A DNA stretch of 64,000 nt, from the sequence record NC_071039.1, one strand, 5' to 3'. A model generated the notes under the pieces. The model worked only from the letters and a program-made list of their open reading frames with translations. It was not told where the DNA came from and ran no database searches. The position numbers and the translations under genes were made by a program. This document shows positions 12,432-61,794 of the stretch, piece by piece (the first letter of the stretch is position 1; each line of letters opens with the position of its first letter).

Positions 12432-13166
12432 ATTAGTTTCTATTTTTGCTTTATCTAGTTGCTGTTTACTAATATATTTCACATTAATTGTTACATTTTT
12501 GTTATCTTTTGCTTTGGCTAACCTATGAGCACCGTCTATTACATATATTTTACCGTTGTCTTTATACACTATTATAGGGATGCTCACGTCGGCAGCTTTT
12601 ATTCTCGACGACGCTAATTTGTTATATCGTAATATCCATGTTAAGTCTTTTATTTTAACACTTTCTACAGGAGTATGCTCTGTACTTCTAAAAATATCAT
12701 CTAATCTATATTCATTACCATTATGCGTTACTGTACTATGTTTACCTTCTGAATAAGATTCAGAAATAGTATTAATGTTGTTGCCTATGTTAGATATTCT
12801 TGTTAAACTAGATTCAGTATTAGAAGCTATTATGTCTCTACTATCTCCTGATCCTTTAAAATCGTAAACAATTATTCTTACTACATTAGGGAATATAGAA
12901 GATTTATTTACTTTAAGTCTTTTTATACGGTTACCCTGGTTGTCGTATAATGTTTCGTCAATTATATTAATATTAAAAGATTTTGCTAAATCTTTTGCAG
13001 TAATACCTACTTCTGTGGGCGATTCTTTAGAATATCTAGCCCTATTATCTATTACTAACTCGGTATTGTTAAAAAATGGATATTTATTCAATACATTGTT
13101 TAATATTTTTTTAAATTTTGTATCTATAGGCTTAAACGGTAAAATCTCGCCTTCTATAAATCTCAT
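12417..13166 (-). CDS. Hypothetical protein with C-terminal ParB/Srx-like domain
   Basis: PIIVYKDNGKIYVIDGAHRLAKA motif. Confidence 0.65.
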   Translation of the reverse strand: MRFIEGEILPFKPIDTKFKKILNNVLNKYPFFNNTELVIDNRARYSKESPTEVGITAKDLAKSFNINIIDETLYDNQGNRIKRLKVNKSSIFPNVVRIIVYDFKGSGDSRDIIASNTESSLTRISNIGNNINTISESYSEGKHSTVTHNGNEYRLDDIFRSTEHTPVESVKIKDLTWILRYNKLASSRIKAADVSIPIIVYKDNGKIYVIDGAHRLAKAKDNKNVTINVKYISKQQLDKAKIETNKKEA

Positions 13167-13168
13167 TA

Positions 13169-13666
13169 TTATTTACTCAGCTGTTTTACTTTCTCTTTAT
13201 TCTCTTCTGTCCAGAAATTATTCCAGCTACAGAATACCCAACCCTTGTAATCTATACTATTATTTACTTTAATCCCGGTTTTTTCTTCAAATACTACCCA
13301 TTTGCCTTGCCGAGTTATTTTTATAAAAATAATATTAAAATCACCTTCGCTAGCAGTATCACGTACCTGTGATATCCATGTATCTAATTGTTTGCACTCT
13401 CCCTCGAACAACGAAGTAAATGAAAATTTTGCATACGATTTACATTCAGAATTAAAATGTTCCCATGTATCTGGAGGGAAAATATCACCTTTATAGGATT
13501 TGATTTGATTATTGCCTAGTGATGTTTTTCTGACAGAATTTTGTCCTCCTATAAAGGCACCTGAATGTGCTGTTCTAGTAAAGGGTTCGTTGTAAAATGA
13601 GGTAAGATCTTTTGCTACATCTCGTTCCCAGCTACTACCTTTAATTTTACTTTTCGATCCAGACAT
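13169..13666 (-). CDS. Holliday junction resolvase-like PD-(D/E)XK nuclease
   Basis: SKIKGSSWERDVAKDL...GAFIGG...GDI...NSECKSY pattern of phage Hjc-like resolvases. Confidence 0.75.
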   Translation of the reverse strand: MSGSKSKIKGSSWERDVAKDLTSFYNEPFTRTAHSGAFIGGQNSVRKTSLGNNQIKSYKGDIFPPDTWEHFNSECKSYAKFSFTSLFEGECKQLDTWISQVRDTASEGDFNIIFIKITRQGKWVVFEEKTGIKVNNSIDYKGWVFCSWNNFWTEENKEKVKQLSK

Positions 13667-13740
13667 GTTTTGTTAACCTTTTATATACCTGTTAAATTTT
13701 ACATTATTTAGTTAATTTTATACCCATATAATACTGCTGA

Positions 13741-13748
13741 GATAAATA
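13741..13748 (+). promoter_or_regulatory. Late promoter motif GATAAATA upstream of the large ncRNA candidate
   Basis: Exact motif, with no + strand ORF downstream until 15180. Confidence 0.45.
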
Positions 13749-13797
13749 TGTGTGTAGATAACTTATAGCATTATTTTTAACGATTTTAGTACAATGG

Positions 13798-13826
13798 TTG
13801 ACAGTATTAATATCGTATGCTATAAT
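13798..13826 (+). promoter_or_regulatory. Perfect-consensus sigma70 promoter
   Basis: TTGACA-17 nt-TATAAT. Confidence 0.85.
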
Positions 13827-13831
13827 CCGCA

Positions 13832-14737
13832 ACATAATAAAACTAAAGAACGTATGTAACAAAACAGACGTTCTCCTAAGTGTTTTAAAGTTTTTGCTTA
13901 GGAAGACCCAGTTGTATGTTTAAAGGGTGAACGGTAACGGGCATTCTTGTTTAAGACTAGTTCTTATGAAGACATTGGCAACTAACATAGCAGCTTTGTT
14001 CCATAACTGGATATTGGTAGTAGAAACTATCCCCATCGTGCCTTTACTGTAGTACCGTTAGAGACGGAGATAACGCAGGAAAAAAGGTTATTTAAATTAT
14101 GATTTTGGGTGCTGCAGAACACTTTCGTAAACAAAAGGAATATAGTTTACGTATACACAACGGGAACGGGAAAAAGCTTTTTAAGCAAAAACGAGTCCCT
14201 GGTAATTGGTGTTTAACGGGAGTGACGTCCCAAATGTTATTCATCGATTAACACTGTAAGAAGGTTGTAAGGGTTATTGTGTTCGAAGTGGTTTACACAA
14301 CTGTTCTTCCTACATTTATGTACAGAAGTGTAAACGAAAGGATGTTGCTCTGGTAGAAAAAGATCAACGTACTTTATGACACTATCCTTGTGACATATGT
14401 ACTTGTACCAACAACAGCCGCAGGTTACGGATATGGTATTACAAACTGTACTGCGGTTCCGGGAGTTGAAAGTGGATGTTAGCTTAGGTGGCTGTTTGCT
14501 TAATTATAATGTTTAATTTAGGCAATATAAGCGTCGGGTGAGGCTTTCGTAGGTTGCGTGTTTATGCTACGGTGTAAATGGGCTAGACTACTGGCGCATA
14601 CATGAGTATTGTAGGATTGGCGCTTTAATAAAGAAATTTGTTAAAGTTTGAGTTTAGCTCCCCGCTCATTAGCAATAAACGTTGCTAGTCGATAGTATAC
14701 CCACGCCTAAATAATGCCGTCATTGTTTAGTTTTTTT
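13832..14737 (+). ncRNA. Candidate large structured noncoding RNA (~900 nt), family not recognised
   Basis: No ORF >=60 aa in six frames; bounded by consensus promoter and terminator; hand-counted lines 35-50% GC versus ~20% in the flank; many nested stems with G-U pairs on + strand. Confidence 0.65.
14707..14737 (+). terminator. Intrinsic terminator closing the ncRNA candidate
   Basis: CTAAATAATG-CCGT-CATTGTTTAG (10 bp, one G-U) followed by T7. Confidence 0.65.
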
Positions 14738-14742
14738 AAAAA

Positions 14743-15027
14743 ATATAATTGTCAATTATATGTCGTACGCATCTACCCCGAAAAGGGGTAGATGTTTATG
14801 ACTTTCGTTTACACTCATGTCATAATCAGTACACGCCATTTTAGGCCATTCTACATCAATACACTGCTTCTAGCAGTGTATTGGACATACAAAATAATCT
14901 TAAATTATATCAAATTTGTTTAATTACTTTAATTTTGTTACTTTAGTAACTTGTATTTTGTTTATATGAGTTGTAGTTTACGAAAACGAATATAAACAAA
15001 ATACATATGTGAACTGTAGTTCACATA
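14743..15027. repeat. Cluster of six inverted repeats in AT-rich DNA
   Basis: 14743-14761, 14770-14794, 14857-14883, 14937-14950, 14952-15005 (16-bp arms), 15006-15027. Confidence 0.8.
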
Positions 15028-15139
15028 CTTACTAACGTTGTATATTACGGTAATTCTATAAAATATCTCTATATAATTATAAACGTTTTATGGCATACTA
15101 CGACTGAACGAAATTGAAAATTAACTAGAGATTTAATTA

Positions 15140-15147
15140 GATAAATA
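15140..15147 (+). promoter_or_regulatory. Late promoter motif GATAAATA
   Basis: 33 nt upstream of ORF 15180. Confidence 0.55.
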
Positions 15148-15179
15148 ATATTGTAAAAATTGTATAGAGGTATACATCA

Positions 15180-15632
15180 ATGAACGATTACACACATTAC
15201 ACAGAGGAAGATTTCATATTTTTAGCATATGATTTAAATACTCAGCTTATAAATGATGGATATCCTGACGCTGCTGTAAAATTTATTACTAATCAGTTTA
15301 TTTTAGAGCATAGACATCCTGACGAAATAAAACGTTGTATAGGATGTAATTCTAAAATGTACGAAGATGTTATTGCTACTAAGAGAAATTTATCTGGTAA
15401 ATCGCATTGCAGACATTGCGAATCGAAACTTAGTATGTATAAGGAAGTTGTTAAGGAAGTAGCAAATACAACACAAATACTTCGCATACCAGAAAAACAT
15501 TTAAATTCAGTTAAACGATTAATTAGAATATATAATGAGCAAAACAAAACTAGTGCATATCAGAGTATAATAGTTAAAACAAAGAAACTTAACACAGGAG
15601 TTTCTAAAAAGTCAAAAAGAAAGGGACGTTAA
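15180..15632 (+). CDS. Hypothetical protein with CxxC...CxxC zinc ribbon and basic tail
   Basis: CIGC...CRHC; RBS GAGG; ends in bidirectional terminator. Confidence 0.7.
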   Translation: MNDYTHYTEEDFIFLAYDLNTQLINDGYPDAAVKFITNQFILEHRHPDEIKRCIGCNSKMYEDVIATKRNLSGKSHCRHCESKLSMYKEVVKEVANTTQILRIPEKHLNSVKRLIRIYNEQNKTSAYQSIIVKTKKLNTGVSKKSKRKGR

Positions 15633-15648
15633 TTGTCCCTTTCTTTTT
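15614..15648. terminator. Bidirectional terminator
   Basis: AAAAAGAAAGGGAC-GTTAATT-GTCCCTTTCTTTTT. Confidence 0.8.
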
Positions 15649-15874
15649 ATAGGAAGCTTCTACCTGTTTCTGCTTCAATTTTTTGTTTAATAAATTCTCC
15701 TAAACGTACCCGCTCTTGGTATGATAAAGACCAAGCAGTGTGCCAGTCAAATCCATTAATTTTATCACATATTTGGACTATTTCGCCTTCTAATCCCAGT
15801 GATTCTTGTTCATATTCTTGTATAACGTTCCTAATATCATCTGGGGTTCCCGATACTAGGATTCTCTGAAAAAA
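15647..15874 (-). CDS. gp51-like baseplate hub assembly chaperone domain without its own start codon (probable -1 frameshift extension of 15856..16710)
   Basis: Manual translation QRILVSGTPDDIRNVIQEYEQESLGLEGEIVQICDKINGFDWHTAWSLSYQERVRLGEFIKQKIEAETGRSFL*; no ATG/GTG/TTG after upstream in-frame TAA; stop abuts terminator. Confidence 0.7.
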   Translation of the reverse strand, partial: FFQRILVSGTPDDIRNVIQEYEQESLGLEGEIVQICDKINGFDWHTAWSLSYQERVRLGEFIKQKIEAETGRSFL

Positions 15875-20921: not shown

Positions 20922-21142
20922 TGAAAATAAACGATATTATAACAGAAGGTTATTATAATCCTGCAGACGATTCTAGTGCAATTGCACATAAGTCAGACAC
21001 ACGTAGACCTAGACTAACATTTTCTCATTTAAATAAGCTTAGAAAAATGAGAGAATTGCGTAAAGTAGAAACAGAAGAACATTTAGTGTTAGTTAGACAA
21101 ATGTATAGCCAACCGATACAATCGGACGATGCATTTGGATAA
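20921..21142 (+). CDS. Small head-associated protein
   Basis: Coupled to portal; DTRRPRLTFSHLNKLRKMR. Confidence 0.7.
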   Translation: MKINDIITEGYYNPADDSSAIAHKSDTRRPRLTFSHLNKLRKMRELRKVETEEHLVLVRQMYSQPIQSDDAFG

Positions 21143-40934: not shown

Positions 40935-40946
40935 TATTCTTTATGA

Positions 40947-40954
40947 TATTTATC
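40947..40954 (-). promoter_or_regulatory. Late promoter motif GATAAATA for fibre operon
   Basis: TATTTATC upstream of 40934. Confidence 0.65.
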
Positions 40955-41017
40955 ATAGTAATTTTAGGTAAATTTATGAAATTATATTTATTTTCTTTTA
41001 TAAAACATAAAATATAG

Positions 41018-41046
41018 TTGTTTAATTTAGCTGGGTGTAATATAAT
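41018..41046 (+). promoter_or_regulatory. Possible sigma70 promoter
   Basis: TTGTTT-17 nt-TATAAT. Confidence 0.45.
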
Positions 41047-41052
41047 TTGTAG

Positions 41053-41321
41053 TGTATGCAATACATTTGCATATATACCAAGCACTGTATGGTGAGTTGC
41101 ATACAGCGATGGGCAATCGTAGTGCCGACATTGATCTAGTATGATCTGAAATAGGTCCCTTACGCCGAGGTAAGGCTATCTGGCACGGATAGTAGTGGAT
41201 GTGTATGTTCGAAATAACGATATCATATTTTAGACATACGCCGCCGTCAGCATTTTTAGTTTGCAACTGCTGATATCTTTAAGTTTTGTTGATGGCCGGG
41301 GGTGGTGCCCAGTGCATTTTT
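41053..41321 (+). ncRNA. Candidate structured ncRNA (~265 nt), family not recognised
   Basis: GC-enriched intergenic island with at least six stems, G-U pairs on + strand, possible pseudoknot, ends in T5. Confidence 0.55.
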
Positions 41322-41516
41322 ATTGTAGAGTTAATGTGTAAAAGAAATAAATGTGATTAAAGACGAGGTTCTTTTCTAAAACTGTTTCTAAAAATAATTG
41401 CGTTAAACCTTGGGTTTAATTAGTGTATTATATATGCTATATAATTAGCCCTACATAAACATGTATGTTTAACTTGTTTAGTTAACAATAAAATATGCAA
41501 ATTAAGGAATTAACTT

Positions 41517-41684
41517 ATGACTAAATTTAATAAAAAATCGTTAGATACGTATGAAGATAGAGAAGATTATAGAGATGAAGAAACCGGTGACAGGTTAAAT
41601 AATAAGAAATCTGAACCTAAAAAAAATAATACTGATTATAAGCCGTTTGGTAAAATTACCAACCGCTATAATAATGATAATTAA
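41517..41684 (+). CDS. Small charged protein (55 aa; below ORF-track cutoff)
   Basis: AAGGA RBS; MTKFNKKSLDTYEDREDYRDEETGDRLNNKKSEPKKNNTDYKPFGKITNRYNNDN. Confidence 0.55.
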   Translation: MTKFNKKSLDTYEDREDYRDEETGDRLNNKKSEPKKNNTDYKPFGKITNRYNNDN

Positions 41685-41712
41685 ATAGTAAATATTATTA
41701 TCATTTACTACG

Positions 41713-48004: not shown

Positions 48005-50188
48005 GTGAAATTAGAATCGGATAATTCTGTAACAATAGAATCTACAAATATGGTAGGTGGAAAATCTTTCACTATTAAAAATAGTCCGAAAGCCTTTTCT
48101 ATTCTATCTAACGGATTATATAAAGATAAAATTCGTGCAATTGTAAGAGAAATTGGGTGTAATGCACGAGATAGTCATGTTGCAGCAAATAAATGTGATG
48201 TTCCTTTTGAATATCATGTTCCTACTGATTTAGAGCCGTTTTTTAGCATAAAAGACTTCGGTGTAGGTTTAGATTACAACGAAGTAATGAATATTTATAC
48301 TACTTATTTTGATTCTACAAAAACCCAATCAAATGATTTTATTGGTGCTTTTGGGCTCGGATCAAAGTCACCGTTTTCCTATGTAGATAATTTTTCTATA
48401 ATTTCTACAAAAGATGGAATAACAAGAACTTTCGCTGCATTTATAAGTGAATCTGGTGTTCCGGATATGCTTATGCTAAGCGAAATAAAAACAAATGAGC
48501 CTAACGGAGTCGAAGTAAAGATTCCTGTGTCAAATCGGGCTGATTACAAAATTTTTGATAAAAACTGTGTAGATGTATATTCGTGGATGAATGTGTTGCC
48601 AGTAGAAGTAAATGGCCACCATGTATTAAAAACCCCAGAAGTTTTTCTATCTGTGACAAACAGAGCTACAATATATAAAGGCACTAATGAATCACATAAA
48701 CTATACGCAAGACAGGGCGGAGTATTATATCCAATTGATATAGAATCTATATCCGAAGAATATCTTGATGATAGCTATGTCCGTAAATTAGATAATAGAA
48801 ACTTTTATTCATATTTTGTTGTAATAGATTTTAGTATAGGAGAATTAGATGTATCTGCATCTAGAGAAGAATTATCTTATATTCCGTTAACTCAGAAAAA
48901 TTTATCTACTGCATTAATTGATTTCGTATGTTCCTTTACTAAAGCTATCACAGATGATATAAATTCTAATATAGACGCAGTAACGAAAACAAAAGTGTTA
49001 TATGAATATAAACAGAAATCATTTAATATATTTGTTCCTGATATAAAAACATTAACCAATATCATATATGCCAATATTTCGGATTCTGTAGAGATAGGTC
49101 AAGTATATATACCGATATCTGAAGTAAAAGCATTGTTTACCAATGTTAACTATTATACACTGGATTATGGTATTTTTAGGAAGGCAAGATTTTTAGTTAC
49201 ATACTATAAACATCTAAGTACAGGTGAAATAAAAAGATATAGAAATTATACTTCCAGTGCCTCATACGAAGATATAACATATATTTCTGATAATATAGCA
49301 ATTGACGATAGTAATACTGTAAAATATTTTATAATAGATGATAATACATCGACAAGAGCAATAAGAGACTATATATCGAATATTTACAGAGCACGGTGTA
49401 AAGTTATAATTTGTAAAAATAAAAATGGAAAAATAAAAAGAAACGATATATATAATTTCGCAAGAAAATATTATATTTCTAAATCGCAAATTATATTTTC
49501 GTCTGATCTAAATATTCCTGTTATTCCTAAGCAAAATAACAGAATCAAAAAAGAAGATGAAGAATGTATTTTGTTATGCAGAAGTTTTAATATATGGAAA
49601 GAATCGATAGTAAAACTGTCTGATATAAAGGATGATTGCTATTATGTAGAATTTTCTGGATGGAATATGACTACTGATTTGTCTGATTCGGATATTACTG
49701 CACTTACATTATATCATTCTAAACCGATATACGGGGTAAGAAAGATAACCTTAGAACAAGTCAAGAAAAATAAACATTTTATTCCTATTACTGATCATGT
49801 AATAGATGAAATGTATAATAATGTTAAGGATGTTATAAAACAGTGTAGACCAGATTCTACTTATTCTGATGTAGACAAATTGCTTTATTATATAAATTCT
49901 GCAAACTTAAAGGACTCATTAACAAATACTGAAATAAAAGAATATGAAAAATACAAAAATACTTATAAACCGATTAGTGAGTCGTCGATTAAAAATATCA
50001 TACGACATTTAGATACAGAAAAACTAGATAATCAATTAAAAATAATACATAAACGCGCCAGCCGGTACGAAAATATTCTATCTAAGTATCCGCTTATTGA
50101 ACACGTCAATTTAAGTAAAGTAGGTATAATACACGTAGTGAATTATATGAATATGATAGATAACAACGGAGAATCTAAAAATGACTAA
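48005..50188 (+). CDS. rIIA: rIIA-like protein
   Basis: N-terminal GHKL ATPase: AIVREIGCNARDSH, IKDFGVGL, STKTQSNDFIGAFGLGSKSPFSY; followed by rIIB. Confidence 0.88.
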   Translation: MKLESDNSVTIESTNMVGGKSFTIKNSPKAFSILSNGLYKDKIRAIVREIGCNARDSHVAANKCDVPFEYHVPTDLEPFFSIKDFGVGLDYNEVMNIYTTYFDSTKTQSNDFIGAFGLGSKSPFSYVDNFSIISTKDGITRTFAAFISESGVPDMLMLSEIKTNEPNGVEVKIPVSNRADYKIFDKNCVDVYSWMNVLPVEVNGHHVLKTPEVFLSVTNRATIYKGTNESHKLYARQGGVLYPIDIESISEEYLDDSYVRKLDNRNFYSYFVVIDFSIGELDVSASREELSYIPLTQKNLSTALIDFVCSFTKAITDDINSNIDAVTKTKVLYEYKQKSFNIFVPDIKTLTNIIYANISDSVEIGQVYIPISEVKALFTNVNYYTLDYGIFRKARFLVTYYKHLSTGEIKRYRNYTSSASYEDITYISDNIAIDDSNTVKYFIIDDNTSTRAIRDYISNIYRARCKVIICKNKNGKIKRNDIYNFARKYYISKSQIIFSSDLNIPVIPKQNNRIKKEDEECILLCRSFNIWKESIVKLSDIKDDCYYVEFSGWNMTTDLSDSDITALTLYHSKPIYGVRKITLEQVKKNKHFIPITDHVIDEMYNNVKDVIKQCRPDSTYSDVDKLLYYINSANLKDSLTNTEIKEYEKYKNTYKPISESSIKNIIRHLDTEKLDNQLKIIHKRASRYENILSKYPLIEHVNLSKVGIIHVVNYMNMIDNNGESKND

Positions 50189-50924
50189 TGCAATTCCATA
50201 TATTATTAGAAAAGATAGTGTAACGGTGGTATTAACTGATACTCCGTATATCATAAGGGAATCTGATAAAAAATATAAAAAAGCAATTAAATATATAAAA
50301 GCCGAACAGTGGGATGAATTAAAGAAGTTAATTGATGTTAAAAATCATATTTCTGAATTCCTGAATGGTAAAATTAAAGTAGTCCGGGGTCGGTTTGAGT
50401 ATAATGGTCAGGTAATTCATAATTCCTTAACTAAACGGATTATGCAAATGCATTCTGACGGTTTTCCAGTAGACCCGATGATTAATTTCCTTGTAAATTT
50501 AATGGAAAATCCTAGTTTTACTGCGGTTAATGGTTTGTATGATTTCTTAGAAACAAATAATCTTCCTATTACTACTGACGGATTCTTTTTAGCATACAAA
50601 CGAATTCGTGAAGATTATACTGATGTAAGAACTGGCACAATAGATAACAGCGTAGGTAAAGTTGTTTCTATGCCAAGAAATGAAGTACAAGATAACAGCA
50701 ATATTACTTGCGCTCCTGGATTGCATGTATGTTCGCGCGAATATCTACAACATTTTAGTGGTGAAAAGGTAATATTAGTAAAAGTAAATCCTAAAGATGT
50801 GGTGTCTGTTCCTAAGGATTATAATTTTTCTAAAATGCGTACTTGTAAATACGAAGTAATATCCGAGCTGTCGTTAGAAGATGCGTTTGAAGATATTGCA
50901 TCTAACAAGCCAGTTCACAGTTAA
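50181..50924 (+). CDS. rIIB: rIIB-like protein
   Basis: LYDFLETNNLPITTDGFFLAYKRI, MPRNEVQDNSNITCAPGLHVCSREYL. Confidence 0.9.
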   Translation: MTNAIPYIIRKDSVTVVLTDTPYIIRESDKKYKKAIKYIKAEQWDELKKLIDVKNHISEFLNGKIKVVRGRFEYNGQVIHNSLTKRIMQMHSDGFPVDPMINFLVNLMENPSFTAVNGLYDFLETNNLPITTDGFFLAYKRIREDYTDVRTGTIDNSVGKVVSMPRNEVQDNSNITCAPGLHVCSREYLQHFSGEKVILVKVNPKDVVSVPKDYNFSKMRTCKYEVISELSLEDAFEDIASNKPVHS

Positions 50925-50937
50925 TAAAACTGTACAT

Positions 50938-50969
50938 AAAAAGGGATGCATTGCATCCCTTTTTATTTT
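50938..50969 (+). terminator. Intrinsic terminator
   Basis: AAAAGGGATGCA-T-TGCATCCCTTTT. Confidence 0.7.
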
Positions 50970-51007
50970 ATTATAAAATATGTTACTATCCTTTAATGGT
51001 ATAAAAT

Positions 51008-53029
51008 ATGAAAAATTATTTGTTAACTGTACCTGTCAATTCTAATGTAGATTATACTAAACTAGATATACACGATTTTGTTCCTGCAATAAAAGAATTA
51101 ACAACTAGATTATTTTATAACACAGGTGTAACACTTCAAAAAGAAACTATTTTGTTTAATGATTTGGTAGTATCCGAAGATGCTAGTCGATTAGCATTTA
51201 TTAATAGCATTTTGCATAATCTATTGAATACTTGCTCTACTACTGAGTTAGAAAATATTGCAGATGAGTGTGATACTATTTGCACAGAATACTATAATAA
51301 TTCTAGAATCGCATATTCTGAAAGAGAATACAATGCATATAAAAATATAAAAAATAATGAATCGTATTTTTCAAGTCTAAAATATTATGAACAAAAATAT
51401 GTAATTGATGCTATAGAATATTACGAAGAAGAATCTGATATTAATTTCTCGCATGATACAAAAATATACCTATCATCTTTATATTCGAAACTTAATAAAG
51501 CACAGCAGAATTTTTCTAATAATATAATAAAACATACTGCAAAAAACAGGTATTATTTTGAACACGATTTCCAAGTTGAAGGTATACCAGATAACATAAA
51601 AGATATAATGCGGGAGAATGCAAGGGCAGACGGTCATGAATCCGGATATGTAGCTACAACTGAACACTACATCTACACAGCTATAATGCAATATTGTTCG
51701 TACGAGTATACTAGAAAAACAATGTTAGAAGCTTTTTATGTAGCTAGTAACGGCGAATATAGCAATACAACTAATATAACAGATATTGTATCTATTAAAT
51801 CTGAAATAGCAAAATTGTTTGGGTTTAGTACGTTTGCAGAAAAATCATTAAAGCATAAAATGGCAAAAACACCCGATAATGTATTTTCTGTATTAAATAA
51901 ATTGAAAGACTTAGTAGTAGATAAAGCATTAGAAGAAGAAAAAGAACTTTTAACTTTCGCTAAATCTAAAGGATACCAACGACCTTCTGTCCGCGCCGCT
52001 GACAGAAATTATTATTCTACTATGAGATTAAAAGAAGAATATAATTTAGACAAAAAGGTTATAGAAGAGTATTATACATATGCCGGTGTTCTTCCTTGTA
52101 TATATGGTGTTATAAAAAAACTTTTTGATGTTACATTTGTAGAAGACCCCGATGCATCTGTGTGGCATGAAGATGTTAAATGCTATAAGGTATTCGAAGA
52201 TAGCAAGCATATTGCATATATTTTTATAGATCCGTTTTCTAGGAACGGAAAACAATCCGGGGCATGGATGAATGGTATTATTAAAAGGGATTTTGCTTAT
52301 AATACCACTCTACCGGTTGCAGTAATAGTGACTAATCTGTCAAAAACATCTATTACGTTAGATGATGTACGTACACTCTTGCATGAATTTGGTCATGCAT
52401 TACACCATGTACTTACTAAAGTAGAATTTCCTAATTATAATGGAATTTCTGTAGAATGGGATGCAGTAGAATTGCCGAGCCAATTATTGGAAAATTGGAT
52501 TAATGATAAAGAGCTTTTAATTGAAATGTCGTCTCATTATTCTACAAAAGAAAAAATTCCAGAATATATAATTGATAACTGGTTGGCTATAGATAATTAT
52601 ATGGCTGCGTCTTCGTTAAGAACACAGTTATTATATTCATTAGTAGATATGAAAATTTTTAATAGCAATGCAAAGACAGATAAAGATTGTATAGAAATTT
52701 TTAATGAAGTAGCAAAAGATTTAAAATTAAACACAGAAGATAATCCGTTTATGCATTTGTTTTTATATTCGTTTTCTCATATATTTTCCGGAGGATATAC
52801 AGCAGGTTATTATAGCTATTTGTGGGCAGAAATTATGTCAAGTGATGTTTATTTAGAATTTAAAAATAAAGGAATGTATAATATAGAATTTGCTAATAAA
52901 ATTAAAAAAGATATTCTATATGCAGGTTCTATTAATGACTTTGATGTAATGTATAGAACATTAATGGGTAGAGATCCTGACCCAGAATCTCTGCTAATAG
53001 TTAGGGGATTGCAGAATAGCAAAAAATAA
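51008..53029 (+). CDS. prlC: M3-family zinc oligopeptidase (oligopeptidase A-like)
   Basis: KQSGAWM, TLLHEFGHALHH (HEXXH), WDAVELPSQLLENW, HIFSGGYTAGYYSYLWAE. Confidence 0.92.
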   Translation: MKNYLLTVPVNSNVDYTKLDIHDFVPAIKELTTRLFYNTGVTLQKETILFNDLVVSEDASRLAFINSILHNLLNTCSTTELENIADECDTICTEYYNNSRIAYSEREYNAYKNIKNNESYFSSLKYYEQKYVIDAIEYYEEESDINFSHDTKIYLSSLYSKLNKAQQNFSNNIIKHTAKNRYYFEHDFQVEGIPDNIKDIMRENARADGHESGYVATTEHYIYTAIMQYCSYEYTRKTMLEAFYVASNGEYSNTTNITDIVSIKSEIAKLFGFSTFAEKSLKHKMAKTPDNVFSVLNKLKDLVVDKALEEEKELLTFAKSKGYQRPSVRAADRNYYSTMRLKEEYNLDKKVIEEYYTYAGVLPCIYGVIKKLFDVTFVEDPDASVWHEDVKCYKVFEDSKHIAYIFIDPFSRNGKQSGAWMNGIIKRDFAYNTTLPVAVIVTNLSKTSITLDDVRTLLHEFGHALHHVLTKVEFPNYNGISVEWDAVELPSQLLENWINDKELLIEMSSHYSTKEKIPEYIIDNWLAIDNYMAASSLRTQLLYSLVDMKIFNSNAKTDKDCIEIFNEVAKDLKLNTEDNPFMHLFLYSFSHIFSGGYTAGYYSYLWAEIMSSDVYLEFKNKGMYNIEFANKIKKDILYAGSINDFDVMYRTLMGRDPDPESLLIVRGLQNSKK

Positions 53030-53120
53030 TAAATTTTGCTGCATATATAAAAAGCTATGTAACGCTGTGCTATTTGGCTTTTGTTGCATTTTATAGCACA
53101 AAAACCCCATAAAAATAGCC

Positions 53121-53149
53121 TAGACAAGCAACTGTAAACACTGTATAAT
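53121..53149 (+). promoter_or_regulatory. sigma70-type promoter
   Basis: TAGACA-17 nt-TATAAT with TG extension. Confidence 0.7.
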
Positions 53150-53176
53150 TGCTTTATTATAGTAAGGGATAAAATA

Positions 53177-53473
53177 ATGAACATTCATTTATCTTTTAAG
53201 GAACAACTTTCTAAGCTAATTGATGAAAACATAAATAAATACCCCGATGCTATAGATTGGATAGTATCTCAAATGGCTTTAATAGATATTGAATCTAAAA
53301 AGACAAAAGCAGAATCTATTATGGAAGCTCTTATAGGTGATACTGAATTTTTTAATAACCCTATAGAACAGGGTGGAAGTAATAAAGATTTTATAGTGTG
53401 GTATGTAACTAAATATAATTGTACTACTAAATACGCTATAGAACGGTTACTTCATTATTGTAAACAGAATTAG
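53177..53473 (+). CDS. Hypothetical protein
   Basis: RBS AAGGGA; own promoter. Confidence 0.65.
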   Translation: MNIHLSFKEQLSKLIDENINKYPDAIDWIVSQMALIDIESKKTKAESIMEALIGDTEFFNNPIEQGGSNKDFIVWYVTKYNCTTKYAIERLLHYCKQN

Positions 53474-53560
53474 CCCTTAGGACCGCCAAATGTTTTGGCT
53501 TAAGGCGCACCGGTGCTGTATCGGAGCTTAGTGATTCGCTACCACAAAAGCATAAGCAGC

Positions 53561-53588
53561 TAGGAGACTTAAAACGTCTCCTATTTTT
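53561..53588 (+). terminator. Intrinsic terminator
   Basis: TAGGAGAC-TTAAAAC-GTCTCCTA-TTTTT. Confidence 0.8.
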
Positions 53589-53600
53589 ATATATACAGGA

Positions 53601-53801
53601 GTGAAGTATATGAATAGCGATTATGCCTCTATGTTTATAGTAATATTTGCTATATTGGTTGTGTTTATTTGTAAACCGACAACATTTAATGAGCCTAAAA
53701 ACACTATCGATACAAACAAAAGCAATGTAGCGAACGACAGTATTCCACTTACAGGAAACATTTCTAGAACACCGGGTATAGGTACAGGTATAGGATTATG
53801 A
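53601..53801 (+). CDS. Small membrane-anchored protein
   Basis: RBS AGGAG, N-terminal TM helix. Confidence 0.6.
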   Translation: MKYMNSDYASMFIVIFAILVVFICKPTTFNEPKNTIDTNKSNVANDSIPLTGNISRTPGIGTGIGL

Positions 53802-53950
53802 AAAAGAAAAACCCAATCGAGCGCAATCCAGTTGCACATCATGTAAACACATTTAACAAACCTAAAGTAGAAAAAGACAAGACAAAATACTCTAGGAAAC
53901 AAAAACACAGGACTAGGAATAGTCCTGATTTTTTATGTATAATATATTGA
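53798..53950 (+). CDS. Small basic ArfA-like protein (50 aa; below cutoff)
   Basis: MKKKNPIERNPVAHHVNTFNKPKVEKDKTKYSRKQKHRTRNSPDFLCIIY; AGGA RBS; ATGA overlap with upstream gene. Confidence 0.65.
   Translation: MKKKNPIERNPVAHHVNTFNKPKVEKDKTKYSRKQKHRTRNSPDFLCIIY
53908..53934 (+). terminator. Intrinsic terminator inside the ArfA-like ORF
   Basis: CAGGACTA-GGAA-TAGTCCTG-A-TTTTTT, upstream of in-frame TGA at 53948. Confidence 0.8.
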
Positions 53951-53956
53951 CAGATA

Positions 53957-55117
53957 TTGTATTTGGAATATACAATATGCATAACAAGGAGTGTTATTGT
54001 GGCAAAAACGAAACATATTTTTAAAGTTCCAGATTATTCTCTTTTAAAATTAGATTCTAAGACATATACTAAGGATTATAGGAATGCAATTTGGTATTTG
54101 CATTATGAAGCATCTGCTGCTACTCTTAAATCTGCAACACTAAAATGGATTAAAAATAATACATCTTATGATGTAAAAGATTTATCTTCGTTGAGTGATT
54201 CTGATTTTTCTATTATCGGAAAATATTGTACTATACTAAATGCCGGCGGACAACTTCCTAGTCATGCTAATTTCGTCGAATCACACATAGACAAGATATT
54301 TCAATCTATCAAAAAAGAAGAAATTACAGAAATTGTCGAAGAACCAGAACCTAAAATAGAGCATGATAGTTGCAAAGTTAAAAAAATAAGTATACAGGAT
54401 AGAATTAAGAGCCAGGCATATAAAGCTTGCGGAGAAATTGAAGGATTAATAGATCAATTTTATAGTAATCCTAGTGAGTTTGTAGTATCCCAGCAAGAAA
54501 TAGAATCCTTATTTAAAAAATCAGAAATAAAATCCCATCATGTAAAATATATTACCGAAATATATAGCACTAATAAAAAAGAATTAGAGGAGCTTTCGGC
54601 AGGAAAATCCGAACAGTTAAACGAAGGTTATAATTTTTTAACTAAACGGGATATAAACAAAGCCATAAAGCTATTTAATTTAATTATAGAAACTGCGTCT
54701 AGTAGTAAAATAGTTACTGTTAAGAAACGAGCTAAAAAACAAAAGCCATTGGATATTTCTAAATTAGTTAAATCATTTAAATATTTAGAAAAAAGCACAG
54801 ATCTTAACTTAGAAAGTATTAATCCTGTCCATATTGTTGGTGCAAAAGAAGTATGGGTGTTTAATACAAAAAGTAGAAAGTTAGGAAAATATATTGCTTT
54901 AGACACTACAGGTCTATCAATAAAAGGAACTACTATAACTAATTTTTCAGAAAAAAGCATAGAAAAAACTATTCGTAAACCGGAAGAATATTTTAAAAAT
55001 ATTAAGAAAATTTCTAAAAAGGCAAAAGAAAAATTATTTGTAGATACTAAATCTGTCGAAACTAAACTAAAAGGAAGAACAAACGAGCATTGTATCATTC
55101 TTGAGGTTATAAAATAA
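53957..55117 (+). CDS. Hypothetical protein (true start probably GTG ~53999 after AAGGAG)
   Basis: 386-aa ORF; TTGACA-18-TACAAT promoter at 53947-53976. Confidence 0.75.
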   Translation: MYLEYTICITRSVIVAKTKHIFKVPDYSLLKLDSKTYTKDYRNAIWYLHYEASAATLKSATLKWIKNNTSYDVKDLSSLSDSDFSIIGKYCTILNAGGQLPSHANFVESHIDKIFQSIKKEEITEIVEEPEPKIEHDSCKVKKISIQDRIKSQAYKACGEIEGLIDQFYSNPSEFVVSQQEIESLFKKSEIKSHHVKYITEIYSTNKKELEELSAGKSEQLNEGYNFLTKRDINKAIKLFNLIIETASSSKIVTVKKRAKKQKPLDISKLVKSFKYLEKSTDLNLESINPVHIVGAKEVWVFNTKSRKLGKYIALDTTGLSIKGTTITNFSEKSIEKTIRKPEEYFKNIKKISKKAKEKLFVDTKSVETKLKGRTNEHCIILEVIK

Positions 55118-55152
55118 ATAGTGTTATCTATATACAGAGGCACTTTATAAAA

Positions 55153-55905
55153 ATGGCTACAAGTACAGCAAGAACAGAAATAAAGAAACAAATAATGCGA
55201 AGACTGGGAAATAGTATGACTGATGTAGAACTAGACCCAGAAGATTTAGATTTAGCAATAGATTTTGCAATAGATAGATACCGCCAGCGCGCCGAAAATG
55301 CTTGCATGGAAAGTATGCTGTTTATAACTCTGCAAAGAGATGAAACTGAATACACTCTACCTACTGAAGTTCAAGAAGTAAGACGACTATATCGTAGATC
55401 TGTTGGATCAGGAACATCTGGCGGTACTAACTTTGATCCGTTTGAATCTGCATTTTCGAATATATTCTTTTTACAAGCAGGGCGAACCGGCGGTCTAGCA
55501 ACATGGCATCTATTTTCCGAATACCAAGAAACTTTAGGAAGAATATTTGGATCTGAAATAAACTTTACATGGAACTATGCAGATAGAAAACTCACTATCA
55601 TGCGAAAATTCCAAGGTGCCGAAACAGTATTAGTAGTTGTGTGGGTAGCAAAATCTGAAGATGTGCTTTTGACTGATGTATATAGTAGACCGTGGTTAAG
55701 AGATTATGCTATTGCCCAGTCTAAATATATGTTGGGTGAAGCACGTAGTAAATTTACTAATGGCTTACCAGGACCGAACGGTAGTGTTACTTTAAACGGC
55801 GATCAGTTAAAACAAGAAGCATTTGCTGAAATGGAACGTTTAGAAAACGAAATTATAAATTATACAACCGGAACATCGTTTGGTATGCCATTCATTATTG
55901 GATAA
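55153..55905 (+). CDS. gp13: Neck protein gp13-like
   Basis: IMRRLG....VELDPEDL...WLRDYAIAQSKYMLGEARSKF..LPGPNGSVTLNG; AATAAATA late motif at 55113. Confidence 0.85.
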   Translation: MATSTARTEIKKQIMRRLGNSMTDVELDPEDLDLAIDFAIDRYRQRAENACMESMLFITLQRDETEYTLPTEVQEVRRLYRRSVGSGTSGGTNFDPFESAFSNIFFLQAGRTGGLATWHLFSEYQETLGRIFGSEINFTWNYADRKLTIMRKFQGAETVLVVVWVAKSEDVLLTDVYSRPWLRDYAIAQSKYMLGEARSKFTNGLPGPNGSVTLNGDQLKQEAFAEMERLENEIINYTTGTSFGMPFIIG

Positions 55906-55909
55906 ATGG

Positions 55910-56551
55910 ATGATTATAGGGACGTTAGGATTTATTGGGTCAGGAAAAAATACTGTAGCAAAATATTTAGTTGAAAATCATAATTTTATACAGGATAGTT
56001 TTGCGGCAGCGTTAAAGGATTTACTGTCATCTACTTTTAGTTGGGATAGAACGTTATTAGAAGGTACTACACCGGAATCTAGGCGTTGGAGAGAAACTAC
56101 AGACACATGGTGGGCGACAAAGTTAGGTATACCTAATTTTACTCCTAGGTATGCAATGCAATATATAGGAACTGATGTATTACGGATGCATTTTAATGAT
56201 AATTTATGGATATTAACATTAGAAAAGCGATTAGAATCATTTATACAAAATAATAAGAATGTAGTAGTATCAGATGTAAGATTTAAAAATGAATATAATA
56301 TGCTAAAGCAATATGGTACAAAGTTCATATATGTAGAAAACGTTATCCCAGAATGGTATAATATTGCATTAGACTTAAATACATCAGACTATACTGATAA
56401 AGAAAAACAAAATATTATCGAGAATTCGTCATTAAACGGTGTCCATATATCTGAATGGGATTGGGTAGGATTAGGTTACGATGAGAAAATTATTAATAAT
56501 AGTACACTGGAAGAACTGTTTCTAACTGTAGATAGTATTATTAATAAATAA
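55910..56551 (+). CDS. Deoxynucleoside monophosphate kinase (T4 gp1-like)
   Basis: MIIGTLGFIGSGKNT P-loop; SFAAALKD; TPRYAMQYIGTD; VVSDVRFKNE. Confidence 0.9.
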   Translation: MIIGTLGFIGSGKNTVAKYLVENHNFIQDSFAAALKDLLSSTFSWDRTLLEGTTPESRRWRETTDTWWATKLGIPNFTPRYAMQYIGTDVLRMHFNDNLWILTLEKRLESFIQNNKNVVVSDVRFKNEYNMLKQYGTKFIYVENVIPEWYNIALDLNTSDYTDKEKQNIIENSSLNGVHISEWDWVGLGYDEKIINNSTLEELFLTVDSIINK

Positions 56552-56555
56552 TATA

Positions 56556-56578
56556 AATAGGGGCAATGCCCCTATTTT
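56556..56578 (+). terminator. Intrinsic terminator
   Basis: AATAGGGGCA-A-TGCCCCTATT. Confidence 0.65.
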
Positions 56579-56614
56579 ATTGAGTGTTATATCTGCAATG
56601 ATTATTAAGTATGC

Positions 56615-56622
56615 GATAAATA
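56615..56622 (+). promoter_or_regulatory. Late promoter motif GATAAATA for tail sheath
   Basis: Upstream of gp18 start at 56669. Confidence 0.65.
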
Positions 56623-56668
56623 CTGATATCGTAATACTGTATAATTCATAAAGGGAGATTATAACACA

Positions 56669-59308
56669 ATGGCAACTCTCATTTCTCCGGGTGTAAGTGT
56701 AACTATAACAGACGAATCTTTTTATGCATCGTCTGGTCCGGGAACTGTACCGCTTATAATCATAGCAACTGCTCAAGATAAAACTGATAGTGCCGGTACT
56801 GGAATTGCACCGGGAACCACTAGACAAAATGCAGGTAGACTATGGCTAATTAGTTCTCAAAGAGAACTACTACAAACGTTTGGTGTTCCGACTTTTAAAA
56901 CAGTTGGCGGAACTGCATTGCACGGATATGAACTAAATGAATATGGATTGTTAGCAGCACATTCGTATTTAGGAATATCTAATAGAGCCTATGTTGTGCG
57001 GGCAGACGTAGATACATCTCAGTTAGAACCTTCTGATACTGAGCCCACTGCTAATCCTGCAGACAACACCTATTGGTTAAACCCTACAAAAGTTGTGTCG
57101 GGATTATATGAGTCTAACGGCACTGACTGGGTAAAAGCAAATGTATTTTATGCAACTGAATTTGACGCAGCTGGTCGCCCAGCAAATGTTCCGTCTAGTT
57201 ACAAATATGCAATGTCAGTAGGACAAGCTGCTCCTAACGTAGAAAATGCAATATATAGACGCAACATATCCGGCGCATGGGTTTTAATTACTGCCAACGA
57301 TAATACAGTTGTATATAATAAGGTATATCCTGTAGTAGGTGCTGTAGGGAATCTATGGGTAAACCTAAGGGAAACTTCATATGCATTGTCTAGATTCGAT
57401 GCAAATGTAGGAAGTTTTGTATCCGTATCTACTCCTTTGTACAAAACGAGCGATGATGCTACCGACGGTTTCGGAACTACACTACGCCAGGGCTCGGTGT
57501 TTGTGCAATATAATGCAAAAGGAACATTATCTAGTGCAGTTAATCCTGCAGTAACCGAACTACAACATAAGGTAAAAATACACAACGGTAACACTTTCAC
57601 TGCTGTTTCTGTAACCTTAGCAGCAACTGGTCCTTATAGCGATACATTAGTATTAGGACGCTATAACGGAACATCAGTGACAGTTAACGCATCTGGTTCT
57701 AGCGTAGAGGCATTTGCTCAATCGTTAGGACAAGCTTTAGTTTCTAACGGTGTTACTGATATTTCAGTTAATTACAATACTGCCTCTAGAATGGTAGCGT
57801 TAGTTAACGATAGTGGAAAAGATATAATAGTTACATCATCTACTATGTTTAGTGCCGGCATATATTCTAATTGGGTTCCACTAGAATATAGTTCTGCTGT
57901 AAAACAACCATCCGGTCAATTAGATAACGGTACATTGTGGTACAGCACAGATTATAAAGTTGACATTCTAGTTAACGATGGCGTAGGAGCATGGACTGAT
58001 TTAGCTGGCAATTTATTTGTACAAAGTGCTGAACCTACTACTAACGTAGCTGACGGCGATGTATGGGTAAGCACTTCGTCTGCAGGCAATTATCCGGTTA
58101 TATATCGTAGGGTAAATAACCAGTGGAGATTAGTAGATAATACTGATCAAACAACACCTAACGGTGTAATATTTGCTGATGCAAGACCTGTAAATTCCGG
58201 AGCATTAGATGCAGACGCACCGGACGCACTTGCATATCCGCAGGGAATCTTGCTATTTAATACTCGCTATTCCACACGTAACGTTAAACAATGGCAAAAT
58301 AATTATACCTTTGAAGGTAACGTTATAGGAGATAGATGGGTATCTGTTAGTGGTTTAAGATCGGACGGCTCTTTATACACCGGCGGCGAAGCAGTTAAAC
58401 AAGTAGTCGTTCGTTCTATTGCTAGCACAATACAGGCTAATGAAGATATTCGTTCTGAAAACGTGTTTTATAACCTAATTGCTGCGCCTGGTTATCCTGA
58501 ACTAATAGACGAGTTAGTAGCATTAAACGTTGATAGAAAACAAACTGCATTTGTTATAGGCGATTCGCCATTTACTTTGAGTGCAACTGGTACTAATTTA
58601 CAAGAATGGTCTTCTAATTCTAAATTAGCAACAGAAAACGGTTCAGATGGATTAGTTACTGCTGATCCGTATTTAGGTGTATATTATCCGTCCGGTCTAA
58701 GTACAGATCTAAATGGTAACAATGTAGTTGTTCCTCCTAGCCATATGTTACTTCGTACTATTGCGTATAATGACCAGGTTGCATATCCGTGGTTCGCTCC
58801 GGCAGGATATCAACGTGGTATAGTGTCTAACGCAACTTCGGTAGGTTATATAAACAGCGAAGGTGAATTCGTTGCAGTTTCGTTAAATGAAGGGCAGCGG
58901 GATACTCTGTATACTAATAATGTTAACCCGATATCGCAAGTGCCTAATAGAGGTATAGTAGTATGGGGTCAAAAATCTAGAAATCCAGTTACTTCGTCAT
59001 TGGATAGAGTTAACGTAGCAAGATTGGTAAACTATGTTAGATATCAATTAGATTTGTTGCTAAAACCGTTTGTATTCGAGCCAAACGATTCACGTACTCG
59101 TCAAGCAGTGCAGGTAGCAGTAGAGGCTTTCTTAAGCGAAATAGTAACATTACGCGGTATCACTGATTTCGTTGTAGACTGTTCTGATTCTAATAATACT
59201 CCGGATCGTATAGATAGAAACGAATTGTGGGTTGACGTTGCAATAGTGCCCACCCGTGCAGTTGAATTTATTTATGTTCCGATTCGTTTGCAAAATACCG
59301 GATCTTAA
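56669..59308 (+). CDS. gp18: Tail sheath protein
   Basis: LISPGVSVTITDESFY; PWFAPAGYQRG; RDTLYTNNVNPI; WGQK; LDRVNVARL; FVFEPND; NNTPDRIDRNELWVD. Confidence 0.95.
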   Translation: MATLISPGVSVTITDESFYASSGPGTVPLIIIATAQDKTDSAGTGIAPGTTRQNAGRLWLISSQRELLQTFGVPTFKTVGGTALHGYELNEYGLLAAHSYLGISNRAYVVRADVDTSQLEPSDTEPTANPADNTYWLNPTKVVSGLYESNGTDWVKANVFYATEFDAAGRPANVPSSYKYAMSVGQAAPNVENAIYRRNISGAWVLITANDNTVVYNKVYPVVGAVGNLWVNLRETSYALSRFDANVGSFVSVSTPLYKTSDDATDGFGTTLRQGSVFVQYNAKGTLSSAVNPAVTELQHKVKIHNGNTFTAVSVTLAATGPYSDTLVLGRYNGTSVTVNASGSSVEAFAQSLGQALVSNGVTDISVNYNTASRMVALVNDSGKDIIVTSSTMFSAGIYSNWVPLEYSSAVKQPSGQLDNGTLWYSTDYKVDILVNDGVGAWTDLAGNLFVQSAEPTTNVADGDVWVSTSSAGNYPVIYRRVNNQWRLVDNTDQTTPNGVIFADARPVNSGALDADAPDALAYPQGILLFNTRYSTRNVKQWQNNYTFEGNVIGDRWVSVSGLRSDGSLYTGGEAVKQVVVRSIASTIQANEDIRSENVFYNLIAAPGYPELIDELVALNVDRKQTAFVIGDSPFTLSATGTNLQEWSSNSKLATENGSDGLVTADPYLGVYYPSGLSTDLNGNNVVVPPSHMLLRTIAYNDQVAYPWFAPAGYQRGIVSNATSVGYINSEGEFVAVSLNEGQRDTLYTNNVNPISQVPNRGIVVWGQKSRNPVTSSLDRVNVARLVNYVRYQLDLLLKPFVFEPNDSRTRQAVQVAVEAFLSEIVTLRGITDFVVDCSDSNNTPDRIDRNELWVDVAIVPTRAVEFIYVPIRLQNTGS

Positions 59309-59329
59309 CATAAATTAGTAATGCAAAAT

Positions 59330-59352
59330 AAAAAGGCACTTAGTGCCTTTTT
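59330..59352 (+). terminator. Terminator after sheath gene
   Basis: AAAAAGGCACT-T-AGTGCCTTTTT. Confidence 0.75.
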
Positions 59353-59354
59353 AT

Positions 59355-59383
59355 TTGACTATAAATTATATCTATAGTATACT
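59355..59383 (+). promoter_or_regulatory. sigma70-type promoter for second nuclease-like gene
   Basis: TTGACT-17 nt-TATACT directly after terminator. Confidence 0.75.
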
Positions 59384-59409
59384 ATTGTTTAAAACTAAGG
59401 ATTGCTTTT

Positions 59410-61026: not shown

Positions 61027-61035
61027 TGCCCCTTT
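61015..61035 (+). terminator. Intrinsic terminator
   Basis: AAAGGGGCA-TAA-TGCCCCTTT; stop codon forms the loop. Confidence 0.7.
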
Positions 61036-61069
61036 ATTTGTATCCTATAATGAAAAATTGTTAGTTACT

Positions 61070-61077
61070 GATAAATA
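61070..61077 (+). promoter_or_regulatory. Late promoter motif GATAAATA re-initiating tail tube gene
   Basis: Between terminator and gp19 RBS AGGAGA. Confidence 0.65.
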
Positions 61078-61114
61078 TGTTTATCGTAATAACGAGACAT
61101 TAATAGGAGAATGT

Positions 61115-61735: not shown

Positions 61736-61743
61736 TAAGAAAT

Positions 61744-61780
61744 CTGCAAGCTATTTTACTTAGCTTGCAGTTATTCTTTT
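61744..61780 (+). terminator. Probable terminator after tube gene
   Basis: CTGCAAGCTA-loop-TAGCTTGCAG followed by TTATTCTTTT. Confidence 0.6.
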
Positions 61781-61794
61781 TATTGGATTTATAT

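Follow-up and report, generated by a model that had tools for sequence, protein, structure and literature searches.

The locus examined here raises the question of what is encoded in an interval of 1513 nt (13667-15179) that forms the largest gap free of open reading frames (ORFs) of at least 60 aa in a 64,000-nt stretch of DNA from sequence record NC_071039.1 (the window). Over the query region the sequence matches Pseudomonas phage vB_PaeM_PA5oct (MK797984.1) at 100% identity. This jumbo phage of 287 kb is placed in the genus Wroclawvirus (family Arenbergviridae), and the window corresponds to positions 62001-126000 of the PA5oct record (window position = record position - 62,000). An earlier note, made from the letters of the sequence, had read this gap as a structured RNA; the gap is indeed the largest in the window, and the longest ORF inside it has 52 aa. 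Here it is proposed, with a probability of about 0.85, that window 13798 to ~14737/14800 is a structured noncoding RNA (ncRNA) gene of ~0.9 kb belonging to the family of ncRNA004, which is one of the four 'putative lncRNAs' (long noncoding RNAs) annotated from RNA-seq in PA5oct (Lood et al. 2020, PMC7318152 Table 1). The proposal draws on two paralogues with the same layout of promoter and RNA, one of them defined by RNA-seq as ncRNA004, and on compensatory changes in helices; transcription of the window's own copy, named copy A, is predicted from its sequence.

Three related units in PA5oct

Two further copies of a core of ~126 nt were found by local blastn in the rest of the PA5oct genome, and an initial blastn search had returned three 'places' in every matching genome. 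The three copies and the two additional cores are as follows:

Window 13798 to ~14737/14800, + strand: copy A, the largest copy.
Record 12.8-13.7 kb (L002 12810-13720), + strand: copy B, an unannotated gap of ~900 nt in the 39-kb terminal repeat.
Record 12,900-13,029 (L002 12901-13027), + strand: core of copy B, 84% identical over 131 nt, E = 2e-33.
Record 246.1-246.7 kb, + strand: copy C, the published ncRNA004.
Record 246,155-246,276 (L005 20152-20273), + strand: core of copy C, 83% identical over 126 nt, E = 1e-29, inside ncRNA004.

The annotated paralogue, ncRNA004 (EST35_0353), is a discrete RNA of 619 nt at record 246116-246734 on the + strand (PMC7318152). Copy A and ncRNA004 share the strand, the type of promoter, the core, a second conserved block (block 2), the position of hairpin P7 and a 32-nt block downstream. 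Copy A exceeds ncRNA004 by ~250 nt, having an additional 5' domain and a larger middle domain; its promoter is a perfect consensus, with TATAAT where ncRNA004 has TAAACT, and its 3' domain cannot be aligned with that of ncRNA004. Measured to the first terminator, copy A has ~905 nt against ~640-660 nt for copies B and C, and the extra length is explained by its 157-nt 5' domain together with the expanded middle domain. Copy B, being inside the 39-kb terminal repeat, would be present twice per packaged genome; in its leader, 17 nt from the 5' side of the core (12900-12916) are present a second time (12879-12895).

A covariance model of the core retrieved exactly three copies in PA5oct, at 164-171 bits, the next best match having 19 bits; this search covered the genome except record 50001-62000, where a motif scan gave no further copy. 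No relation to the three-copy family was found for ncRNA001-003. The published ncRNA003, unrelated in sequence, is at record 103065-103368 (window 41065-41368) and overlaps the only other window gap of at least 400 nt (41267-41712); it is contained in the stretch 40935-41712, the second largest ORF-free gap. Full-text paper searches found no mention of the paralogy of ncRNA004, and judging by the sources searched neither the family nor its fold had been recognised before. The suggestion that the RNA is possibly new calls for a qualification, since one member of the family was already listed as a putative lncRNA; copy A itself had not been annotated as an RNA.

The elements that would delimit the transcript of copy A are:

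13798-13826, + strand: sigma-70 promoter, with TTGACA (13798-13803), a 17-nt spacer and TGcTATAAT (13818-13826).
14707-14737, + strand: probable intrinsic terminator 1, with a 10-bp AT-rich stem containing one G.U pair, a CCGU loop and U7, as read from the sequence.
14770-14806, + strand: probable terminator 2, CAUCUACCCC-GAAAA-GGGGUAGAUG with a U-rich tail; its GC-rich hairpin (14770-14796) is stronger than that of terminator 1.

The promoter, described earlier as a TTGACA-17-TATAAT site, matches at 12/12 positions with an extended -10 (TG), and is the sole 12/12 site in 13000-15800, with a predicted transcription start near 13833. The same arrangement is found on the same strand and in the equivalent place in the other units, B having TTGACA-17-TATAAT like A, and C having TTGACA-17-TAAACT. 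For ncRNA004, the 5' end given in the annotation is ~12 nt from the predicted start of copy C, which by homology supports the start of copy A at ~13833. The contrast in base composition was also borne out, with a GC content of 35-44% across 13800-14700 vs 21.5-27.5% at 13600-13900 and 14800-15200. The late-motif site at 13741, GATAAATA, is a 7/8 match only. For the hairpin-T7 terminator at 14707-14737, the stem and the T7 are present and plausible, but with fewer than 3 GC pairs the hairpin was passed over by the terminator scanner; its T-run differs in length among strains. Between the two candidate terminators, at window 14743-14761, there is a perfect 9+1+9 palindrome, ATATAATTG-T-CAATTATAT, which could serve as an operator-like site for a protein. 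Together with its surroundings (32 nt in all) it is matched at 84% by L005 35203-35234 (record ~261.2 kb), on the opposite strand.

Conserved core and variable domains

The best-conserved part of the RNA is the core, which has the following elements:

13990-14115 (~126 nt), + strand: core, a four-way junction, 83-84% identical to B and C.
13990-94 with 14111-15, + strand: P1, the closing helix of the core.
14000-11, + strand: P2, hairpin UCCA-UAAC-UGGA, kept in all paralogues.
14016-31, + strand: P3, a helix of the core.
14032-40 with 14098-14109, + strand: P4, which encloses P5 and P6.
14054-68, + strand: P5, within P4.
14071-74 with 14087-90, + strand: P6, within P4.

The RNAalifold fold of the core has 34 pairs, 4 of them compensatory. 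The changes are seen in P1 (GCAGC/GCUGC in A vs GUGGC/GCCAC in C) and in P5 (CCGU/ACGG in A, CUGU/ACAG in B, CCGA/UCGG in C). When 15 core sequences were used (three loci in each of five genomes), 96.5% of the cells were paired vs 31-52% with slid 3' partners, and all strain variants in the core stems are A-U to G.U. The fold contains four G.U pairs that never vary, and these restrict it to the + strand. The stretches TGGATATTGGTAGTAGAAACTATCCCCATCGTGC (34 nt) and GTTATTTAAATTATGATTTTGGGTGC (26 nt) show no difference between copies, and in P2 the stem is fixed with the tetraloop free to vary (UAAC, UCAU, UUAC, UUAU). Across the three units, the core starts 34-157 nt downstream of the sigma-70 promoter. 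Within the internal loop of P4, at the same site in B and C, there is an invariant 8-nt self-complementary sequence, AUUUAAAU (14090-97), which could, speculatively, mediate pairing between RNA molecules in principle.

Outside the core, the RNA of copy A is organised into the following domains and helices:

13833-13989, + strand: 5' domain particular to copy A (157 nt; 34 nt in B and 48 nt in C), with hairpins at 13848-13873 and 13874-13903.
14126-14151, + strand: hairpin P7, CGTAAAC/GTTTACG, always 10 nt downstream of P1' in the three copies.
14152-14336, + strand: variable hairpin-rich domain, including the GTTTACAC/GTGTAAAC stem at 14291-14335.
14337-14416, + strand: domain 2, a three-way junction starting with the conserved AAAGGAUG; block 2 is 89% identical between paralogues.
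14343-47 with 14412-16, + strand: Ha, UGUUG/CAACA (A), UGAAG/CUUCA (B), UGAUG/CAUCA (C).
14348-64, + strand: hairpin Hb, with loop GUAGAAA in A and GU(A/C/U)GAAA across copies.
14365-72 with 14399-14405, + strand: Hc, with a stem sequence different in each copy and paired in all.
14417-14706, + strand: 3' domain of ~300 nt, which aligns between B and C and hardly with A.
14531-39 with 14699-14706, + strand: closing helix of the 3' domain, GCGUCGGGU with ACCCACGC, as read from the sequence.

Covariation among homologues extends beyond the core, with compensatory changes between paralogues in P1, P5, P7, Ha and Hc. The P7 stems are unrelated in sequence yet fully paired by standard pairs (7/7 in A, 7/7 in B and 8/8 in C), and their loops, AAAAGGAAUAUA (A), AGGAUA (B) and AAGGAC (C), each have the AAGGA element. 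P1' and block 2 are separated by ~220 nt in copy A, and by 89 and 109 nt in B and C, respectively; the junction sequence ACCAA, within 14406-11, is conserved in domain 2. Most strain variants are located in loops or convert an A-U into a G.U pair, a pattern compatible with the predicted fold. These variants include positions 13849 and 13850 (A-U to G.U, hairpin retained), and in phage Deifobo a C-G pair in one hairpin of copy B is fully replaced by A-U; no strain variants were found in 14246-14729. Most of the stems that had been listed earlier are present, including TCCTAAG/CTTAGGA (13874-13903), CGTAAAC/GTTTACG, GTTTACAC/GTGTAAAC, AGCCGCAG/CTGCGGTT, GCGTCGGGT/ACCCACGC (14531/14699) and TAGCAA/TTGCTA. 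The pair 13908/14002 is an exception; it is imperfect and competes with the conserved hairpin at 14000-14011, and so is probably not a native pairing.

Each RNA is followed by a further feature, which in copy A is:

14857-15028, + strand: conserved AT-rich downstream module, with a 12-bp hairpin (14857-83), an inverted repeat (14952-15005, 26-nt arms) and a hairpin (15005-28).

All three RNAs (~38% GC) are followed by 215-440 nt of 20-27% GC with a long inverted repeat, which has 26-nt arms in A and C and is a perfect 17-bp repeat in B. The apical 32 nt of the repeat in A (14963-14994) are identical to L005 20786-20817 downstream of copy C, and the outer arms covary. The AT-rich stretch has 4.6 variants/kb in A and 27/kb in C, and only 2 strain variants were found in 14741-15179. 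This module may be a 3' processing/stability element or a DNA-level site.

Constraint, distribution and known RNA families

All three copies are present in 11 of the 11 Wroclawvirus genomes, with identities of 99.3-100% for A, 98.2-99.3% for C and 97.7-98.5% for B. Variant densities, from five genomes compared per copy, are:

Copy A: 7 variants in 908 nt (7.7/kb); flanking genes ~21-28/kb.
Copy C: 14 variants in 659 nt (21/kb); flanking genes 33/kb.
Copy B: 13 variants in 639 nt (20/kb); flanking genes 52-67/kb.

The RNAs are ~1.5-4 times less variable than the flanking genes, and copies B and C are 5-7 times less variable than the adjacent noncoding DNA, which argues that they are not drifting spacers. 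Downstream of copy C, a noncoding stretch at L005 21095-21790 (record 247.1-247.8 kb) is hypervariable among five strains, with ~100-150 variant sites/kb plus indels; it begins at the conserved terminator hairpin of copy C (21083-21110), in which the stem is fixed and the loop varies.

Copy A has as neighbours gp141, a PDDEXK nuclease, and gp146 (window 15180-15632), which encodes a 150-aa protein without a Pfam match that carries CxxC...CxxC motifs and ends, at the C terminus, in a basic tail. The strain diversity of gp146 is as low as that of the RNA unit upstream (3 variant sites/453 nt), and for this reason both may be co-transcribed or functionally linked. 

A sensitive blastn search of the core against 50,697 phage records gave matches in the 11 Wroclawviruses only, and no core was found in 43 IMG/VR loci around homologues of the gp141 nuclease. 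The closest IMG/VR contig (L007) was rejected as a relative, having a different gene order and an apparent ORF-free stretch that is a long ORF running off the locus. When collections of viruses, metagenomes and genomes were scanned for exact patterns, matches were absent or at chance level and the covariance model upheld none of them; no relatives of gp359 were found. As far as searched, the family is restricted to the genus. In the terminal repeat that contains copy B, GC islands of 44-56% were observed at record 8-10, 16-18, 28-30 and 36-38 kb, in a genome of 33% GC; these may have been acquired from the GC-rich host.

The absence of a match to GOLLD, ROOL, transfer-messenger RNA (tmRNA) or RNase P, as noted earlier from motifs, was confirmed with covariance models and can be extended to introns. 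Rfam 15 gave no match for the whole window at the gathering threshold, and only chance-level matches for 13600-15200 at E <= 10, so that no model of RNase P, group I/II introns, known self-cleaving ribozymes or riboswitches was matched; the best chance-level match for copies A, B and C had E = 0.023. The GOLLD (RF01998) and ROOL (RF03087) models did not match even at E = 10, ARAGORN found 0 tRNA/tmRNA genes in the window, and copies B, C and contig L007 had no Rfam family match either. The PA5oct RNAs resemble GOLLD and ROOL in being phage-borne RNAs of 0.6-0.9 kb with many helices, but the RNA of copy A is not adjacent to tRNAs. Because the family is known from one phage genus only, its covariation support is far thinner than that of GOLLD/ROOL. 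A search for antisense targets found no complementarity beyond chance within the window.

Possible roles of the RNAs

What the three RNAs do is proposed more tentatively. The role considered first, at somewhat less than even odds, is that they act in trans as ribonucleoprotein (RNP) scaffolds or decoys. It is favoured because one paralogue was seen as a discrete transcript, because the units end in hairpins/terminators, and because a compact junction and exposed GGA-type loops, of the protein-binding kind, are conserved. In such a mechanism, copy A would be transcribed early in infection by the host sigma-70 RNA polymerase, and the RNAs would serve in trans as components of RNPs during this early period. 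The invariant core and the GGA-bearing elements would form a docking platform for a host or phage protein, the 5' and 3' domains, which vary, would adjust stability or specificity, and the 3' end would be set or shielded by the long conserved hairpins that come after it. PA5oct depends on the host RNA polymerase throughout infection (PMC7318152).

With respect to a possible protein partner, the RNAs can be compared with the protein-sponge RNAs of Pseudomonas (RsmY, RsmZ, CrcZ). A(N)GGA sites, to which RsmA/CsrA proteins bind, are resembled by AAAGGAUG, which is conserved, and by the AAGGA loops; the GGA/AAGGAUG elements thus recall RsmA/CsrA sites, which is taken as a lead only. The PA5oct RNAs have 10-13 GGA each, of which 2-5 are in an A(N)GGA context and predicted to be unpaired; true sponges have 4-22 sites in 110-370 nt, whereas the PA5oct RNAs have 2-5 good sites in 640-900 nt. 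With a GGA enrichment of only 1.3-1.6-fold, an RsmA-type sponge is not claimed here. A partner encoded next door was rejected, since the flanking proteins of the A, B and C loci are not paralogous.

Several observations weigh against the identification of copy A as a structured RNA gene or against the trans role. GenBank has four tiny CDS (coding sequences), and no ncRNA, at copy A. The covariation has as its basis three paralogues and near-identical strains, and P2, P3 and P4 never vary, so they are uninformative in this respect. The claim that folding energy would be below that of shuffled controls held, though by a modest margin in copy A: the minimum free energy (MFE) of its + strand has z = -2.5 (20 shuffles) and -2.2 (60 shuffles), that of its - strand z = -1.3 to -1.6, and the paralogues have z = -3.9 (B) and -6.7 (C). 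A permutation of strain variants against full-length MFE structures gave 8 pair-breaking variants vs 9.4 expected, which is not significant (P = 0.32), and is not counted as evidence for the fold. The RNA was described by the earlier note as abundant, which finds no support in its only measured paralogue, as ncRNA004 accounts for 0.08, 0.03 and 0.02% of phage reads in early, middle and late infection (PMC7318152). The non-paralogous flanking proteins give no sign of an encoded protein partner, and the weak GGA enrichment leaves no clear sponge signature. Finally, the conserved AT-rich modules with long inverted repeats could point to a function at the DNA level.

This last point leads to an unlikely alternative, raised in the earlier note as an R-loop primer and given no specific support here, in which the units are replication origins and the RNA is a pre-primer. 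As with RNA II of ColE1 and oriF and oriG of T4, the structured transcript from the strong promoter would stay hybridised in the AT-rich region and its 3' end would prime the leading strand, with the long hairpins as helicase- or primase-loading signals. The likeness to these systems includes a strong host-type promoter, a folded transcript of several hundred nt and an AT-rich region with hairpins; the AT-rich 215-440 nt with a long inverted repeat follow each RNA and are conserved among strains in A and C, and the distance from the promoter to them (640-900 nt) resembles that in ColE1, which is roughly 550 nt. Copies A and C are located where gene orientation switches from - to +, and several origins would suit a 287-kb T4-related genome with gp46/47-like genes. 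However, no homology to these origins, no antisense partner like RNA I and no origin landmarks were found, including iteron arrays and DnaA-box clusters. In copy A the apparent terminators precede the AT-rich region, the non-template strand is G-rich in copy A only (GC skew +0.18, vs +0.05 in B and +0.07 in C), and the cumulative GC skew tracks the gene strand and does not single out the three loci. Furthermore, ncRNA004 was seen as a free transcript in RNA-seq, and T4-type origins are not known to require a conserved folded RNA.

Also improbable is a cis-acting leader, either a put-like processive antiterminator or a riboswitch-like aptamer, that would control read-through into gp146 (A) or into the downstream + strand genes (B, C). 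The putL/putR elements of phage HK022 are likewise paralogous folded elements placed soon after early host-type promoters in a phage that uses the host RNA polymerase, as PA5oct does throughout infection. In all PA5oct units the core follows a sigma-70 promoter within 34-157 nt, and there are hairpins/terminators between the RNA and the next + strand gene. The invariant junction nucleotides around the closing helix P1 resemble the architecture of an aptamer, and the low strain diversity that gp146 shares with the unit would fit as well. Nevertheless, the put elements are two-stem structures of ~70 nt in operon leaders, whereas in PA5oct the four-way junction of the core alone has 126 nt, and another 500-800 nt of conserved structured RNA come after it, far beyond the needs of a leader. 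Copy B is followed by a separate TTGACA promoter ahead of gp50, the genes downstream of the three copies are mutually unrelated, ncRNA004 is annotated as a discrete RNA, and no riboswitch or leader model of Rfam matched.

A string of small protein genes at copy A, as in the GenBank annotation, is very improbable. The four CDS in question, all hypothetical, have 117-153 nt (39-50 aa):

13704-13835, - strand: gp142.
13920-14036, - strand: gp143.
14099-14251, + strand: gp144.
14397-14516, + strand: gp145.

In PA5oct, PAC2 and the Swiss phage Deifobo, 4-6 CDS of this region are annotated as 'hypothetical protein', and in the 2020 study small CDS had been introduced at every place with transcription in the RNA-seq data (PMC7318152). 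In contrast, the three independent annotations of the sister phages MIJ3, 30-2 and Callisto have no CDS between the PDDEXK/resolvase-like gene and the gp146 homologue, and two of the four CDS are on the opposite strand. None of ten ORFs of 30-52 aa had a Pfam or PHROGs match. As read from the sequences, the small ORFs are not conserved between paralogues: the ORF at the conserved ATG 14099, of 50 codons in A, is reduced to 14 in C and 7 in B, and a mini-frame at AAAGGAUG has four codons in A and B. In the best-conserved frame of the core, an amino-acid change is compensated 120 nt downstream, past the stop codon, which fits an RNA helix and not a protein. Judged from sequence, gp142-145 are probably spurious. 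Least credible of all is a remnant without function (a gene in decay, a defunct mobile element or repetitive junk with a chance promoter), which would fit the restriction to one genus without homologues elsewhere in the collections searched and the strong divergence of the copies outside short blocks, but not the reduced variability of the RNAs relative to flanking genes and, for B and C, to adjacent noncoding DNA, the helices maintained by compensatory changes, the three copies kept in 11/11 genomes, or the lack of translated similarity to protein families in Pfam and PHROGs.

With copy A read as a member of the ncRNA004 family, a single 'putative lncRNA' becomes a conserved three-gene family with a defined covarying core. 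This makes it a tractable object, with precise helices to mutate, three loci and a covariance model to search with, in PA5oct, a model jumbo phage and therapy candidate whose infection is run wholly on the host RNA polymerase. The annotation is corrected at no fewer than two loci, namely the four probably spurious CDS and the unannotated gap of the terminal repeat. A bolder and more doubtful possibility is that these RNAs represent a new class of large ornate phage RNA, with a catalytic, ligand-binding or RNP core and with paralogues that might pair via AUUUAAAU, or else the first RNA II-like pre-primers of a jumbo phage. If true, origin primers or a new RNP/ribozyme core would bear on the start of replication or on host takeover in T4-related giant phages.

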